A stretch of 64,000 nucleotides of DNA, from NCBI GenBank assembly GCA_004764695.1, contig SMSO01000034.1, positions 372,001 through 436,000 of the forward strand, given 5' to 3'. This document shows positions 1-64,000 of this stretch, one piece after another (within the stretch, counting starts at the first letter, position 1; every line of letters begins with the position of its first letter). The translations under genes and the position numbers were made by a program. The stretch is from Schizochytrium sp. TIO01. Its lineage: Eukaryota; Protista; Bigyra: Labyrinthulomycetes. A model generated the notes under the pieces. The model saw only the letters and a list, made by a program, of their open reading frames with translations. It searched no databases and was not told the DNA's origin.

Positions 1-1162
1 GAGAAGCGCAGAACAAGCAACACTCAAGTTTACGCTGACTCTGCGGTTGAAGAGCTCTGTCGTGCATTCATTCGAGCTGTGGGGCGAATGACAATGCAAT
101 TTCTTGGATTTTGTCTGTTCTTGTGGATTCTCTTGCTTGCGACGGGCGAGGCCTTGGAAACCTTGCAATGCTTACGCCTCATTGAGCGTAGCAGCAGTGG
201 CAGTCTGTGCGGGGATAAGCATGAGCTCCTGCGGGTTGGAAACAAAGTCCAAGGTCGCTGCTGTTTTCATAGCGCGCTGTTTGGAATGGATCATAACTTC
301 AAAGCGATACCTGAACTTCGCGTTCTTTGCTTTTTCGAAAGAAACACCACGAAACTGAAAGTGGTTAGTACACAGTAGGTACTTTCAGTTCCTTTTTTTT
401 TTTTTTTTTCCTTTTTAATTTAAAACAAACTACAGTTAGTAGAATAATTTTAAAATTTAATTTAAGAATCATTCCATCAATTTTTTCCAACTCAGCTGCA
501 TCTTCATGACCAGCTGCAGCTTCATTCTAGCACTGCTCACGCAAAGACCACCGCCAAGCATCAGCCAGATCATCGCATCGTCCGCGCCCGCCACGATAAG
601 CTCGAGCTCAGCCAGGCAAACCGAGCTCGGCTCGTGTGGCATACGTCGGAAACCTTAGCTGGTGTGAGCTGACCATAGGAGGGAGGAGGGAGATTCATAT
701 TTCCAGTCCCGTGAGAACTCGCCGCCAAAAGCCTCAGGAAAGACCGCAGCCAGGCTATCTATTCACTCCTCGCCGCGCTGCCCTGGGGCTTCAGCTCCTC
801 CTGCTCTGAGTCGAGGAATTCGTCGCCGAGCGGGTGGGCGGGCGGCCCTCGGTCCAAGCCCGACCTCCTCAAGTCTCAATCTCAAAATCTCAATCTCAAA
901 AAAAAAAATCAAAGCTGCTCGAGCTATGACACGATATATCATATGATGGGAAGAAAGGCGGCGTCTGTTGGTTTTGCGATTCTGCGATTCTGTCTCTCAC
1001 TCAATTGGTTTCCGGAAGAGTGGGAACGCAATCGTCGCGAGCTTTGGCCAAAAGTTCGAGCAAGGCTTTGCGAAGTCTGCCGCCATCGCGAACCCTTCGC
1101 CTTGGAGCGAATCGGCGTCAGTGGCCAGCTCGCTCCGCTCCACTCTCCTCGTCGACGCTGTT

Positions 1163-56486: not shown

Positions 56487-59400
56487 TTAATCTAATTTGA
56501 ATCCAGCGCCGACAATGTCGGATGTTAACAAAGGCGCAAGCTGCTCCAGCAAAGCACTTCGAAGAATTCGGTCATGAATGTTTGTACTCCAGTAACTACG
56601 TAGACGCTCGGCACGCAAGAGTTGCCACGCGTGTTGAACCTGTTCGAATGAATTAGGGAAAACTCTTCCTTGTGCAAGATTCTTTTGGCATTTCCTCACA
56701 TGACGATGACAAGCTTCGCTATCCGTGCTACTATACTCAAGACACCATGCACAAAAGTGATTATTGCATGAATCTCTACTGCATGCCACAGCACAACAAC
56801 CATCAAAGAGCCCGAAGCAAGTGCCGCAGTTTGGGCAGCATATATTCAAAATCTTTTCCTGAATGTGCTGCAGGTGCTGTTTTATGTCACGGGCCAAACC
56901 ATCCGCCTTAAGAAGCTCCGCTACGCGTTTCTCAATCTCTTGCTCAGCTTGAGTTGCAACTGCAATCTCAGTCTTCATTTTCACAATCAACAAAAGATTA
57001 TTCAGAGCGTTTGGCGCAAGCCGAGCAACCTCTTGCACTGAGATTTTCCCCATCACATCCAGGTTTCATGCATGCCATCGTTCCATCTGCGGCGATGATT
57101 ACATGTGCTTGCGGTTTTGCGCCAGCTTCTACTGCGCGTTCGATACAGTCTTTACAAAGGAAGTCTCCCTTCTCACAACTCGTACTCTCGATAAGCGGTT
57201 TTTCCTCCATACACACAAGACAGCTCTCCACAGGAATCTCAGCAACTCCGAATGCACTATGCCGAAGTGCCTGTCGAGCGCTTGGACGCTGACCAGGGGC
57301 CGTTGCTGTGAGACTGTCAATCAGTGTCTGCATCGCAGTGCTTCGCTCAGTGGGATACAGGTCATCTAAGACTACACCCACAGAGTACATATCCATTGCT
57401 GGTTTCGAATTTATCTACGGGCCCATCCTGTAACTCGGGGGCAATATACCGAGGCGTTGCTTGAAGAGACGTGTAAGTTACTGTTCGATTTGCAACTTTA
57501 ATGCCGTCAAAATCACCAATCAATGGTGTTCCGTTGCGTGTGAGGAAGATGTTCTCTGGTTTGATGTCGCAGTGCACAACCCCATGGTCGTGTAAATCTG
57601 CTACGCCTAGAAGTAGGCCTGTCGCAAGACGATCACGAGATGCTTTGCCTTCGTCAGGATAATCTTGAATCCAACGCGCTAAGTCACCTTGCTCGTAGAA
57701 AGGCATAACGATGCAGCCACGCGGTGGGACTCCAGGTGTCATGTCGATGAAAGCACCCCGAATATGTATTACGTGTTGGGAAATCACGTGCCCTAGATTT
57801 GCAACTTGTTTATAGAATTTCTCGGACTGACCTGAATGCTCGAGCTGAAATTGCTTTATAACTAGGGCGTTGCCATTATCATCAAGAACCTTTTGTACCG
57901 TCTTACCGCCTCTAGAAGCAAGAGGCTCCCCAACAGGCTGGAAGTCTGTGATTTCGACATTCGCCAACCAAAGATCTGAGCAAGCCACTTCGAAAACACC
58001 CTCTGTACTTACATGTAGCCTTTCTAACCAGTCTTCGTCCTTCAGTAGCTCTGGGTAGTGTTCTTGTGCGTGTTGCAGAATTTCCGCAAGCTTATGACGA
58101 TACACTTTACTCAGCTCAATAGGTGTCCCTTTGGATAGGATTTCCTCTTGTTTCGCGATTCGATCTCTAAAGTATACTCGACCATCCTCTGTTTCCTCTT
58201 CTTCAAGGTCATGTTTGGCTCTTTTTAAAATATTCATTGCCTTTCGTGAAGCAGCAAGTGCCTTCTCAATTTTCTCAATTGTTGATAAGTTCGGTTTGAT
58301 TGAACCCAAACGGATGGAGACGTACATCGCATCGAATTCTTCTCGCGAAATGATACTGCCCGGTTCAAAATTTGTGGTATTTCCATCTAAGTTTTCAACA
58401 CGACAGAGTATTGAGTTGATGGCCCACAGTATCTCCAATGCCTCAGCTGCAACTGCATCTTCTTTCAGGACTTTTAGCTCATCTCGAAGAGCCTTTCGAA
58501 GCTCCAACAGCTCATGCTGCAGTTCTGTGGCCTTTTCGGGCGTCCTGAGGGCAACGCGGAATGCGTTGTCAAGCCCTAACTGAGATACCCGCTCTATGAC
58601 GTTTTCAACCGCTTGTTTGCTTCGTTGCTCAGCTGTTCCACCTTCCCCGCTCAACTTCAGCTTGTATTCTTGAATGCACTTATCCGTCCGAGCAGCAAGT
58701 TCTTGGCAGTGTTTGAAATCATCTGCAGCTGCATTTTGAGTAGCTGACACATTACCGAAATTGAAGTACCCTATCGAACTTGCAAGTTTCGCTTTGAATT
58801 CGCGTACCGCATTCTCACCATCTCCATCGCTGCCCTCACGAATCCAGGGATGAACGTCTTCTAGAAGTTCTCGTAGGAGTTCTCTTTCTGCGTCCCGAGC
58901 CTCGATGAGACCGGACAAGTCAACCTGAGTACTTTCCCTAATTTGATCTTGCAAGTTCTGCAAGCTTTCTTTACATCTCCTCATGTTACCAGAAACTTGT
59001 CGCAATTTAACTTGCCCAAAGTAGTTTTGAACTGCCGGTCCTATGAACTCCTCCAGCAAAGCAACCCTGGCGCTTTCTCTCCTCTTATCAAGGCTATTAC
59101 GAAAACCTGCAATCTCCTCGGCGAGTTGCATCACATCAAAGAAGCTTGCATTGGCGCCTTGCTGTAGTCCTAATTTCGGAGACGCTGGCTCCCTGGCATG
59201 AGTGCTCTTCATCTCTCTTCGATTGCTCTGCCGCCTTCTCCCAAACGTAAACGCGGGTCCCTGAGATGCTGGCACCGTATCGACGAAGTTTATGTTGACT
59301 CTCTCCTTGATTTCTTGGAATGAAAAACCACTGGACGCAGCTACTCTCTGGGAAGAGCTCACCGTGTCTGGAACGTTTGTATTTCCTCTGTCTCCTGATG

Positions 59401-62400
59401 GGAAAATGTACGTAGCTACTCCAAACGAACAGAGACTTGGCGATGATTTCCTGTGGAAAGTTTGTCCTACCGTATCGATGAAGTTTATGTTGACTCTCTC
59501 CTTCATTTTTTGGAATGAAAAACCACTGAACGCAGCTACTCTCTGGGAAGAGCTCACCGTGTCTGGAACGTTTGTATTTCCTCTGTCTCCTGATGGGAAA
59601 ATGTACGTTTCTCTCTCTATATCTATAACAAGCCCGTCTAACCAGCCTTGGAAATCTACGTCTGGGGAATTGATGTCCTCTCCAAAAAGGCACACCTTTG
59701 CAAACAATTCTTCAGGTGTTAATAAATGTTTTTGAATAAAACAGGTAAATGCCAATCTGCGACTGTTTTGGGTGTCACTTAAATCACACCTGCGCCACGT
59801 TAATCAAATTAGCAGAGCATCTGTTAGAATCAAATCAGCGCATGAGAATGTGGTTAACCTCAGAACTTCACCGAGGATCAGAGAAACACAGGTAATCCTC
59901 TGTTGAAAAAAGAAGCGCTCACAGATGGACTCGAACTTACCAGATTTGAACAGAAGGACACGTTTGGTGCAGTGTCTTGGCAAGGGACGAAGCACCCGCA
60001 AAGCCGACGTTGTTTCCATCAAAGCTGTGAGTGACCATTACACGTTAAATAGTTGCACAAATTGGTCAGATATATGATAATGACAATGCTTTTTTATAAA
60101 AGCGCTTTCAAAAGATTTCCGATTTCCTTCTTTCATTCTCTCAGAATGAAAACCTTTCTGCCAACGAAACGTACTGTAGTATTTTCAGATTTTTGCATCT
60201 CTTTAGCCCTTTTGCAAGGGCCTTGGCGCCCTCATCATCAACTCTATTAGAGGAGAGACTGTGTTGTTTGTGGTTTGAAATGAAAACGTCAGCCAGGCGT
60301 TGTTAGTCTCAATCATTCTTGTACCACCACAGAACACGATGTCGCCACGACACCTAGGTCCTAGATATTTGCAAGCTGAATTAGATTTATTTTGGCATTT
60401 TATGATACTCTCCACCCTGATAAAGCTGCGAAGTGCGTGAAAGCTTCTTCAAGTTGTTATCGATCTCCACTGCTACTAAAACGCGAGCAAACGTGCTGGC
60501 GATGAAACGTACTCTAGTGTTGTCAGATTGGTGCAGCTCTTCAGCGCCTCAGCAAGAGCTTTCATATCTAGTCCACAGTAGCCAAATAAAGTACCAGAAT
60601 GTTTGAGTCTGTGTGATGTAAAATAAATGTCAAAGAACCGTGAGACAAGTCAGTTGGTGCTGTTCATTCGTGTAGATCACTCAAATCAACACTTGAATAC
60701 GCTTTGCTGACTGTTCTTCAGTGTCCGTATTTGTCATATACGTCAACTTCGGTCCTGCCGGCTTATTTTAAATCTAGGTGTGCATTTTGATCTAGTATAG
60801 TGGGAATACAAGATAGGTAAGATGAATGCGACACCCTTTTGAGAGTGTTGAGTCCACTCCCATTGCTTCTGATGCTTATGAACGTACTCTAGTGTTGTCA
60901 GATTGGTGCAGTTCTTCAGCGCCTCAGCAAGGGCCTTGGTGCCCTCAACGCCAATTCTATTAGAGGAGAGACTGTGTTGTTTGTGGTTTAGAAATGAAAA
61001 CGTCAGCCAGGTGTTGTTAGTCTCAATCATTCTTGTACCACCACAGAACACGATGTCGCCACCACACCTACGTCCTAGGTATTTGCACGCTTAGTTGGAT
61101 ATGTTGTGGCATTTTATGATACTCTCCACCCTGATACAGCTGCGAAGTGCGTGAAAGCTTCTTCAAGTTGTTATCGATCTCCACTGCTACTAAAACGCGA
61201 GCAAACGTGCTGGCGATGAAACGTACTCTAGTGTTGTCAGATTGGTGCAGTGCTTCAGTGCCTCAGCAAGGGCCTTGGTGCCCTCATCATCAACTCTATT
61301 AGAGGAGAGACTGTGTTGTTTGTGGTTTGAAATGAAAACGTCAGCCAGGCGTTGTTAGTCTCAATCATTCTTGTACCACCACAGAACACGATGTCGCCAC
61401 GACACCTAGGTCCTAGGTTTTTGCACGCTTAGTTGGATATGTTGTGGCATTTTATGATACTCTCCACCCTGATACAGCTGCGAAGTGCGTGAAAGCTTCT
61501 TCAAGTTGTTATCGATCTCCACTGCTACTAAAACGCGTGCAAACGTGCTGGCGATGAAACGTACTCTAGTGTTGTCAGATTGGTGCAGTTCTTCAGCGCC
61601 TCAGCAAGGGCCTTGGTGCCCTCAACGTCAATGCTATTAGAGGAGAGACTGTGTTGTTTGTGGTTTGAAATGAAAACGTCAGCCAGGCGTTGTTAGTCTC
61701 AATCATTCTTGTACCACCACAGAACACGATGTCGCCACGACACCTAGGTCCTAGATATTTGCTAGGTTGATTAGTCTTGTTTTGGCATAATGTGATACTC
61801 TCCACCCTGATAAAGCTGCGAAGTGCGTGAAAGCTTCTTCAAGTTGTTACCGTTCTCCACTGCTACTAAAACGCGAGCAAACGTGCTGGCGATGAAACGT
61901 ACTCTAGTGTTGTCAAATTGGTACAGCTCTTCAGTGCCTCAGCAAGGGCCTTGGTGCTCTCAGCGTCAATGTCGTTAGAGGAGAGACTGTGTTGTTTGTG
62001 GTTTAGAAATGAAAACGTCAGCCAGGTGTTGTTAGTCTCAATCATTCTTGTACCACCACAGAACACTATGTCGCCACGACACCTAGGTCCTAGGTATTTG
62101 CTAGGTTGATTAGTCTTGTTTTGGCATAATGTGATACTCTCAACGCTGATAAAGCTGCGAAGTGCGTGAAAGCGTCTTCAAGTTGTTATCGATCTCCACT
62201 GCTACTAAAACGCGAGAAAATGTGCTGGCGATGAAACGTACTCTAGTGTTGTCAGATTGGTGCAGTGCTTCAGCGCCTCAGCAAGGGCCTTGGTGCCCTC
62301 ATCATCAATTCTATTAGAGGAGAGACTGTGTTGTTTGTGGTTTAGAAATAAAAACGTCAGCCAGGTGTTGTTAGTCTCAATCATTCTTGTACCACCACAG

Positions 62401-63368
62401 AACACTATGTTGCCACCACACCTAGGTCCTAGGTTTTTGCACGCTTAGTTGGATATGTTGTGGCATTTTATGATACTCTCCACCCTGATACAGCTGCGAA
62501 GTGCGTGAAAGCTTCTTCAAGTTGTTATCGATCTCCACTGCTACTAAAATGCGAGAAAACGTGCTGGCGATGAAACGTACTCTAGTGTTGTCAAATTGGT
62601 ACAGCTCTTCAGTGCCTCAGCAAGGGCCTTGGTGCTCTCAGCGTCAATGTCGTTAGAGGAGAGACTGTGTTGTTTGTGGTTTAGAAATGAAAACGTCAGC
62701 CAGGTGTTGTTAGTCTCAATCATTCTTGTACCACCACAGAACACTATGTCGCCACGACACCTAGGTCCTAGGTATTTGCTAGGTTGATTAGTCTTGTTTT
62801 GGCATAATGTGATACTCTCAACGCTGATAAAGCTGCGAAGTGCGTGAAAGCGTCTTCAAGTTGTTATCGTTCTCTACTGCTACTAAAGCGCGAGAAAGCG
62901 TGCTGGCTGTGAAACGTACTCTAGCGTTTTCAGATTGTTGCATCTCTTCAGCGCATCAGCAAGAGCGTTCATATATTGTCCATCGAAGAAGGAGAAGGAG
63001 GAACCAAAACCAGAAGCGTTTCGTCCGAAGGAACCGAAACGTGAAGCGTTGTGTCCGAAGGAACCGAAACGAGAAGCGTTGCTTCTGAAGGAGGAACCAA
63101 AACCAGAATTGTTCATCCTGTGTGATGTTAAATAAATGTTAACAAGCCGTGAGACAAGTCAGTTGGTGCTGTTCACTCTTGAAAATCATTCCAAATCAAC
63201 ACTACAATACGCTTTGGTGACTGTTCTTCAGTGTCCGTATTTGTCATATACGTCAACTTCAGTGCTGCTGGCTTCTTTTAAATCTGAAGAGATTGCTAAT
63301 CTAATAAGCACTTACATCACCTCCGTGGTGCTCTCACAAATTTCCTCGATTTTCTTTGCCGTGAGCAT
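56487..63368 (-). CDS. 12-exon LRR - helical/coiled-coil - protein kinase - RING1...RING2 (RBR-like) protein, ~1439 aa; two +1 frameshifts in last exon
   Basis: Exons (minus strand): 63368-63316, 63117-62920, 62664-62581, 62325-62242, 61986-61903, 61648-61565, 61310-61227, 60971-60888, 60608-60513, 60258-60175, 60024-59941, 59789-56487. All introns are GT-AG phase 2, and the spliced frame runs into the 59755 ORF. Kinase: VIK, HCDIKPEN, DFDG, APE, DMYSVG. Cys modules: CLVC...C...CKDC...CMKPGC and CPNC...DGC...C...C..HFCAWC. Confidence 0.85.
59274..59608 (-). repeat. In-frame internal duplication (~140 bp, offset 195 bp) in the LRR-kinase gene
   Basis: YIFPSGDRGNTNVPDTVSSSQRVAAxSGFSFQxxKERVNINFxDTV occurs twice (59469-59608 and 59274-59413). 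Confidence 0.95.
60175..62990 (-). repeat. Tandem array of 338-339 bp units, each one 84-nt LRR exon plus a conserved 254-255 nt intron
   Basis: Exon 3' ends at 60888, 61227, 61565, 61903, 62242, 62581, 62920 (spacing 339/338/338/339/339/339), plus a further unit at 60175-60512; introns near-identical. Confidence 0.97.
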
Positions 63369-64000
63369 CGTGCTACAGTCTCTGCTTTGAGCAAACTTGC
63401 CACACTGATTGATGTCCCTCTGCTTTAAATTCAGATTCTTCCCTTGTCAGAAGAAGAAAGACCTCACAAGAACTCTGCGTGATGCTGAGCGAGCGCCTTT
63501 GGAACGCAAGGCTTGCTTTCAAGCACTAGAGTAGCACAGCGCTTGATCGTTGCAGATTTGTCGCATTCATTCAGTACTTTGCGCTGAGAATTCTCAATGC
63601 TAGCTTTGACGAGACTAAATATCCTGTATTTACTTTCCTTTAAAAGGTCCGTTGAGTCAATTTTTTCTGAGAGCGCAAGGAGTCAAACTGGATTTTGGAC
63701 AAAGGTAGTCAAGATAACCTTACGCTTTAGCTGAGCAAGACCATAGGCGCCTACATAGAAGACTTGTGCATTTGGTGAATGCGCGTATTGACGAGAGTCT
63801 CTTGTGGATTTACTGCAGCTTTGAAATTGGGGAGTAGTGTGTTATGATGTTTTTGAACTGCTATTCGTTAATAGAAGCAACCCAAGGGTTTTCGAAATAG
63901 ATGTTCTTTTAAGGTGGATATCTGTTCTTTTAAGGTGGTTGCTTGTGTTGATCTTCTTTTCAGTCTAATCAACTCTCTTCCTTAGTAGCTACACAACACA

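Follow-up and report, generated by a model that had tools for sequence, protein, structure and literature searches.

The window analysed here is a 64,000-nt stretch of the Schizochytrium sp. TIO01 genome (positions 372001-436000 of contig C33, in an assembly of 64 Mb and 37 contigs), and it contains a minus-strand gene whose repeated part encodes leucine-rich repeats (LRRs). Tandem Repeats Finder (TRF), run on the window, reported a 339-bp repeat present in 6.2 copies with 92% matches at 60881-62963, and self-matches gave pairwise identities of 88-100% between units. Each of the six units is a cassette in which, on the minus strand, one 84-nt RI-type LRR exon is followed by a 254/255-nt intron, and a seventh cassette (60168-60505) is set apart from the array by a duplicated exon 1 and its 5' region. 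The introns carry a short palindrome, ACCTAGGTCCTAGGT, made of two 7-nt arms around a single nucleotide, and the original prediction was that intron haplotypes had been reassorted around this palindrome, which could be a recombination signal or hotspot for LRR exon shuffling. We find that exchange between units did take place, and that the mosaic is most probably that of an LRR cassette tandem array under unequal crossing-over and gene conversion, with the palindrome incidental to it.

The first exon encodes Gly/Ser/Phe-rich 30-nt repeats followed by the first half-LRR. All seven 84-nt exons end in GA, and the codon is completed by the first base of the next exon (phase 2-2), so that every intron is in phase 2 and the frame is kept whatever the number of cassettes. 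No long open reading frame (ORF) runs through the array on either strand. When four single exons were scanned against the Pfam profile LRR_6, with matches made to the part of the profile contained in each exon, three gave sub-threshold scores (E 0.0004-0.011) and the fourth, at 61903-61986, a weak hint (E 0.2); the score of the exon at 61227-61310 stays below the cut-off because the exon border splits the profile. The splice sites of the LRR exons are supported by a contig of the RNA-like run X17, which joins 60971 to 61903 with CT..AC on the plus strand, equivalent to GT..AG on the gene strand; both ends of this joint coincide exactly with predicted exon borders, although it is a single joint from a run whose RNA label is a guess. 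The joint, the sole one seen in that run, skips two LRR exons (931 nt), and represents either exon skipping that keeps the frame or, in that strain, a shorter array.

To follow markers along the cassettes, the seven units were aligned, with column 1 placed at the AACGTAC of the unit start. A pair of left markers (a 1-nt indel and a C/T difference within a CpG, in the states L1 and L2) is separated by 74 nt, or 22% of the unit, from a block that occurs in the six array units as allele X or Y. Introns of type L2-X start at 60972 and 62326, L1-X at 61311, L1-Y at 61649, and L2-Y at 61987 and 62665, so the claim that all four left/right combinations are present was confirmed base for base, with every coordinate and marker state correct. 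The two L2-Y units, however, must be counted as a single one, being recent and almost identical copies of each other that share an unbroken match of 313 bp. The displaced seventh unit bears a third allele of the block, Z.

Recombination or gene conversion between units is needed to account for these patterns, as had been proposed. Four-gamete failures were found in 114 of the 595 informative site pairs when the six array units were compared, and in 158 of 666 pairs with all seven. In a permutation modelled on the pairwise homoplasy index (PHI-like), neighbouring sites were less incompatible than permuted ones (p 0.019 for six units, 0.0008 for seven), and a GENECONV-like permutation detected 10 unit pairs with significantly long identical tracts (p<0.03). 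U61896 and U62574 (units are named by their first position) are the pair that is identical over 313 bp, in a run whose ends, at columns 296/297 and 322/323, lie away from the palindrome, and U60881 and U61558 are identical over columns 1-70. Alternatively, exchange might have been absent between left markers and X/Y block, the left pair having arisen twice by recurrent mutation, with a CpG transition at column 132. The C/T difference at this column does lie within CG, and would be mutable if the cytosine is methylated; however, the 1-nt indel at column 110 lies outside any homopolymer and co-varies perfectly with column 132 in 7/7 units, and incompatible site pairs occur throughout the unit. 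We consider recurrent mutation extremely improbable. On the current reading, indel and transition fall together on one branch.

The exchanges were not confined to the neighborhood of the palindrome. The Hudson-Kaplan and Myers-Griffiths bounds agree on a minimum of seven events, located in column intervals 33-40, 40-70, 76-110, 172-183, 183-201, 279-297 and 297-322; the exon holds two of these and the border between exon and intron one, two more flank or overlap the palindrome, and the last two belong to the far intron. The ends of the identical tracts found by the GENECONV-like test are also varied (columns 60, 71, 76, 183, 199, 201, 207, 247, 257, 297, 316 and 320). The presence of 2/7 minimal events within the 29 of 339 nt around the palindrome has a binomial p of ~0.12, with 7 units only, and both events rest on single-site patterns, at columns 183 and 201. 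Breakpoint mapping, suggested as a check on the hotspot, therefore showed a spread over exon and intron, with 5/7 minimal events elsewhere.

A DNA search of the genome, made through exon similarity, found two sister arrays, the closest paralogues of the one in the window, on contigs C5 and C36. At least 19 events, distributed along the entire unit, are required by the C5 array; 0/5000 permutations were as extreme as the observed data, and its significant tract ends fall at 32 different columns. The C36 array requires a minimum of 8 events. Neither the palindrome nor any CCTAGG occurs in these two arrays, whose best short-loop inverted repeats have 4-nt arms. The search for the palindrome in paralogous arrays thus also speaks against a signal, both arrays being at least as mosaic as the one in the window, and cassette mosaicism does not need the palindrome. 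In all three arrays (6, 21 and 8.7 units), one-LRR cassettes exchange pieces shorter than a unit, and do so in their exons as well as in their introns. The C5 and C36 arrays can be aligned to the 339-bp array only in the exon and ~20 nt of flank, and upstream of the C5 array lie older LRR exons with unrelated introns.

The palindrome itself was found where it had been placed, with motif matching confirming four exact copies and one-mismatch copies at 60352, 61066 and 61742, and it does stand close to the X/Y block, 6 nt before the first X/Y site (columns 186-200 versus 207). ACCTAGGTCCTAGGT had 0 matches in dinucleotide shuffles of the window, but all of its copies descend from one unit. When one unit was shuffled, a perfect inverted repeat of at least 7 nt with a loop of at most 3 nt appeared in 113 of 2000 shuffles (5.7%), so that such a repeat is mildly unusual, not striking. 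The palindrome reads A-CCTAGGT-CCTAGGT, a 7-nt tandem duplication around CCTAGG, and owes its inverted symmetry solely to the self-complementary CCTAGG; one unit holds six palindromic hexamers. As single-stranded DNA, the perfect copy folds into a hairpin with a 6-bp stem and a 3-nt loop, at -3.3 to -3.4 kcal/mol, and mutated copies are weaker still, at -2.2 and -0.5 kcal/mol. A stem of 6 bp is far shorter than the palindromes known to provoke breaks. Searched for across the genome with at most one mismatch, the 15-mer occurs only in this array and at scattered, unrelated single sites whose flanks lack similarity.

These properties bear on whether the palindrome, acting as a cruciform or a protein-binding site, could start cassette exchange and so drive LRR exon shuffling. 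At least two inferred events lie in columns 172-201, which include the palindrome, several identical tracts end at columns 183-207, a hypervariable patch begins 6 nt away, and few shuffled units contain an inverted repeat with 7-nt arms. However, the local excess of events is not significant, the two motif-near events depend on single sites, and the motif is absent from the equally or more mosaic C5 and C36 arrays and, at one mismatch or fewer, from all other arrays of the genome. Furthermore, only 4/7 copies are perfect, where a signal should be conserved in all recombining units, the hairpin at -3.3 kcal/mol falls short of the stable hairpin or cruciform expected of a hotspot palindrome, and slippage that duplicated 7 nt explains the motif. 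A role as signal or hotspot is highly unlikely on this evidence. A signal steering cassette exchange in a protist receptor-type gene would, if true, have brought programmed diversification outside animals a step closer; the evidence points the other way, and the mosaic is a generic outcome of a tandem array, the same in sister arrays that lack the motif.

The LRR-coding part of the gene is built of tandem cassettes, each a phase-2 exon with its intron. According to the model of unequal crossing-over and gene conversion, misaligned units, which are ~92% identical, would exchange sequence by both processes. Unequal exchange would duplicate units, partly homogenise them and leave mosaics behind, and exchange between misaligned units leads one to expect all four marker combinations. 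The interval between left markers and X/Y block is then a mere gap between two marker clusters, wide enough for any one feature to fall inside it with fair probability, and the palindrome lies there by position and not as a cause; the palindrome probably arose as a 7-nt duplication of CCTAGGT and later spread with the unit. Several observations weigh against this model. Of the ten identical tracts with the highest significance, five have an end within columns 183-207, and inferred events are ~4 times as dense in columns 172-201 as in the remainder of the unit, so that with only 7 units a local excess may exist. The diversity of the hypervariable patch exceeds that of the remaining intron 5- to 10-fold, which plain concerted evolution does not predict. 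Finally, the phasing of left markers with X or Y depends on the assembly, as short-read contigs break in a 40-nt invariant stretch at columns 132-172.

The last point raises the possibility that the mosaics are consensus chimeras, produced by assembly or polishing from a repeat that is more uniform or otherwise phased. No contig spans the distance from the left markers to the X/Y block, and public runs contain at most 62% of the words sampled from the window; runs from 11 studies range over 9-62%, a spread that might reflect array composition differing between strains, but that collapse of repeats in short-read contigs could also give. On the other hand, 64 Mb in 37 contigs suggests a long-read assembly, in which single long reads would span the 2.1-kb array. 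Short-read contigs of the independent run X1 are exact for 61402-61505, which includes the palindrome, the T of column 201 and X, and for 62042-62124, which includes the T of column 172, the palindrome and Y. The same sort of mosaicism is also found in C5 and C36. An artefact of this kind appears very unlikely.

The hypervariable patch, which coincides with the X/Y block, requires additional explanation. Its alleles X, Y and Z differ at up to 15/30 sites, in contrast to 2-5% diversity in the flanking intron, and no comparable intron patch is present in the two sister arrays. Allele Z matches X at 9/15 X/Y sites, and Y at 6/15 as well as at column 257, which lies a little beyond the patch, and the two kinds of match are interleaved; stepwise substitution therefore fits the three alleles better than one replacement event. 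No external donor for the Y block was found elsewhere in the genome, and compensating indels between X and Y were discarded, since a shifted alignment, made by eye, leaves the differences in place. Under concerted evolution, the flanks would have been homogenised by conversion while the patch drifted into three alleles. The 50%-diverged patch may block extension of heteroduplexes and so stop identity tracts at columns 199-207, where its closely spaced markers would also give the tract ends a sharp definition. There is only a faint chance that palindrome and adjoining patch together form an array-specific site of recurrent DNA breakage or error-prone repair, which, if true, would account for the local excess of tract ends and also for three highly diverged patch alleles within an intron that is otherwise homogenised.

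Table. Positions of the features of the cassette array in the window, their columns in the unit alignment, and the sister arrays (positions given by contig).
Feature	Position	Unit columns	Strand	Basis or remark
Tandem array, six exon+intron cassettes, 338/339 bp each	60881-62963		minus (gene strand)	TRF, self-matches, unit alignment
First exon, start codon ATG at 63116, phase-2 end directly ahead of GTACGT	62920-63116		minus	Six-frame reading, TRF, direct reading
84-nt LRR exon, unit U62574	62581-62664	8-91	minus	Sequence identical to exon 61903-61986
84-nt LRR exon, unit U62235	62242-62325	8-91	minus	Six-frame reading, unit alignment
84-nt LRR exon, unit U61896	61903-61986	8-91	minus	Donor edge 61903 used in X17 joint; LRR_6 E 0.2, below cut-off
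84-nt LRR exon, unit U61558	61565-61648	8-91	minus	Six-frame reading, unit alignment
84-nt LRR exon, unit U61220	61227-61310	8-91	minus	Translation LSSNRVDDEGTKALAEALKHCTNLTTL; Pfam LRR_6 E 0.0021, below cut-off
84-nt LRR exon, unit U60881	60888-60971	8-91	minus	Acceptor edge 60971 used in X17 joint; Pfam LRR_6 E 0.011
84-nt LRR exon, displaced seventh unit U60168	60175-60258	8-91	minus	Intron allele Z; Pfam LRR_6 E 0.00041
Representative intron, 254 nt, GTACGT...ACAG on minus strand	61311-61564		minus	
Remaining introns, 254/255 nt, likewise GTACGT...ACAG on minus strand	60972-61226, 61649-61902, 61987-62241, 62326-62580, 62665-62919		minus	
Exon-1-like duplicate, ATG at 60565, 53 nt, phase 2	60513-60565		minus	Alignment, direct reading
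Left marker pair L2	60990-61012; also 62005-62027, 62344-62366, 62683-62705	110; 132		Extra A at column 110, T at column 132
Left marker pair L1	~61328-61350, 61666-61688, 60276-60298	110; 132		No A; C of CpG
Perfect 7-1-7 palindrome ACCTAGGTCCTAGGT	61404-61418; also 62081-62095, 62420-62434, 62759-62773	186-200		
One-mismatch palindrome copy ACCTACGTCCTAGGT	61066-61080	186-200		
Two further mutated palindrome copies, ACCTAGGTCCTAGAT	60352-60366, 61742-61756	186-200		
X/Y block, allele X	61425-61454; also 61087-61116, 62441-62470	207-236		15 sites differ between X and Y
X/Y block, allele Y	61763-61792; also 62102-62131, 62780-62809	207-236		
X/Y block, allele Z	60373-60402	207-236		
Exon		8-91		Pairwise diversity 0.126
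Intron, first part		92-182		Pairwise diversity 0.025
Intron around palindrome		183-206		Pairwise diversity 0.071
Hypervariable patch		207-236		Pairwise diversity 0.267
Remaining intron		237-339 and 1-7		Pairwise diversity 0.051
C5 array, 21 units x 357 bp	C5:1628443-1636000 (L063/L064)		minus	
C36 array, 8.7 units x 321 bp	C36:1066454-1069259 (L065 4454-7259)		minus	

The 5' end of the gene is partly duplicated. Within exon 1, the 30-nt repeat (3.6 copies at 62999-63108, detected by TRF) encodes a Gly/Ser/Phe-rich N-terminal tail of SRFGSFG-type units ahead of the LRRs. The exon-1-like duplicate is accompanied by a copy of the 5' region at ~60600-60780 (compare 63130-63290), and this duplication within the gene (60513-60780 versus 62920-63290) keeps the ATG and phase 2, without the Gly/Ser/Phe-rich repeats. 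The duplicate may be an alternative first exon or promoter, or the start of a second gene. Joints in short-read contigs that appear to go back along the sequence were considered as traces of extrachromosomal circles, and rejected: 63201-63209 is the window's own sequence, and the contig letters from 63210 on match ~60700 owing to the duplicate of exon 1 and its 5' region at that place.

Downstream of the array and on the same strand, an ORF at 57362-59755 contains a Pkinase domain (E 2.7e-21), and no splice joint from it to the LRR array was seen. Together with a second minus-strand ORF at 56487-57396, it encodes a long coiled-coil-like region with the protein-kinase domain and a tail rich in Cys. 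A ROC-COR domain was not seen anywhere in the window.

We also considered RNA encoded by the introns. Searching 59000-64000 against Rfam at E values up to 1 gave no match in the array, and the weak sR4 match (E 0.67) lies outside it; the RNA fold of intron 61311-61564 was no more stable than that of shuffled sequences (z +0.54). A stem pairing the patch over a long range with the intron's 5' part was rejected as a general feature, as U61220 alone stands out (-19.5 versus -12.7 +/- 2.7 kcal/mol) and the other six units do not. U61220 carries a private A-to-T change at column 320 and with it a complete 9-nt inverted repeat, TTTGCACGC / GCGTGCAAA (61423-61431 and 61532-61540), that links the start of the X block with the intron 5' part and is lacking in the other units.

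Recombination driven by signals or palindromes is exemplified by the recombination signal sequences of V(D)J recombination and by long palindromes that form cruciforms. The array resembles such systems only in having a short inverted repeat beside a variable block within a receptor-type repeat array. Unlike theirs, the palindrome here is neither conserved, nor present in sister arrays, nor significantly enriched for junctions, and it is too short for a stable hairpin and lacks heptamer-spacer-nonamer logic.

Ribosomal DNA spacers and satellite and minisatellite arrays are established examples of tandem repeats in concerted evolution, which proceeds through unequal crossing-over and gene conversion. 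The locus shares with these repeats its head-to-tail, ~92%-identical units, variants common to non-adjacent units, four-gamete failure, long identical tracts with varied end points, and one unit that is a recent near-exact copy. It differs from typical concerted repeats in that the 339-bp unit is a coding cassette of exon and intron, and in that one 30-nt patch escapes homogenisation.

In brown algae, LRR-ROCO and LRR-kinase genes carry one LRR per exon of constant length, for which exon shuffling has been inferred (PMC3341825, PMC11378527), and their cassettes have phase-2 symmetric introns (PMC11378527). The papers describing these cassettes report no recombinase or recombination signal (PMC3341825, PMC11378527). 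The array in the window has in common with them one LRR per exon, a constant exon length divisible by 3, phase-2 symmetry and a repetitive exon-intron structure. In contrast to the brown-algal genes, its exons are 84 nt long and RI-type (LRR_6), and its neighbor downstream is the kinase ORF, with no ROC-COR seen in the window. The closest described system is that of the brown-algal one-LRR-per-exon, phase-2 ROCO and LRR-kinase cassettes, and the process that acts on the cassettes in the window is probably standard concerted evolution.

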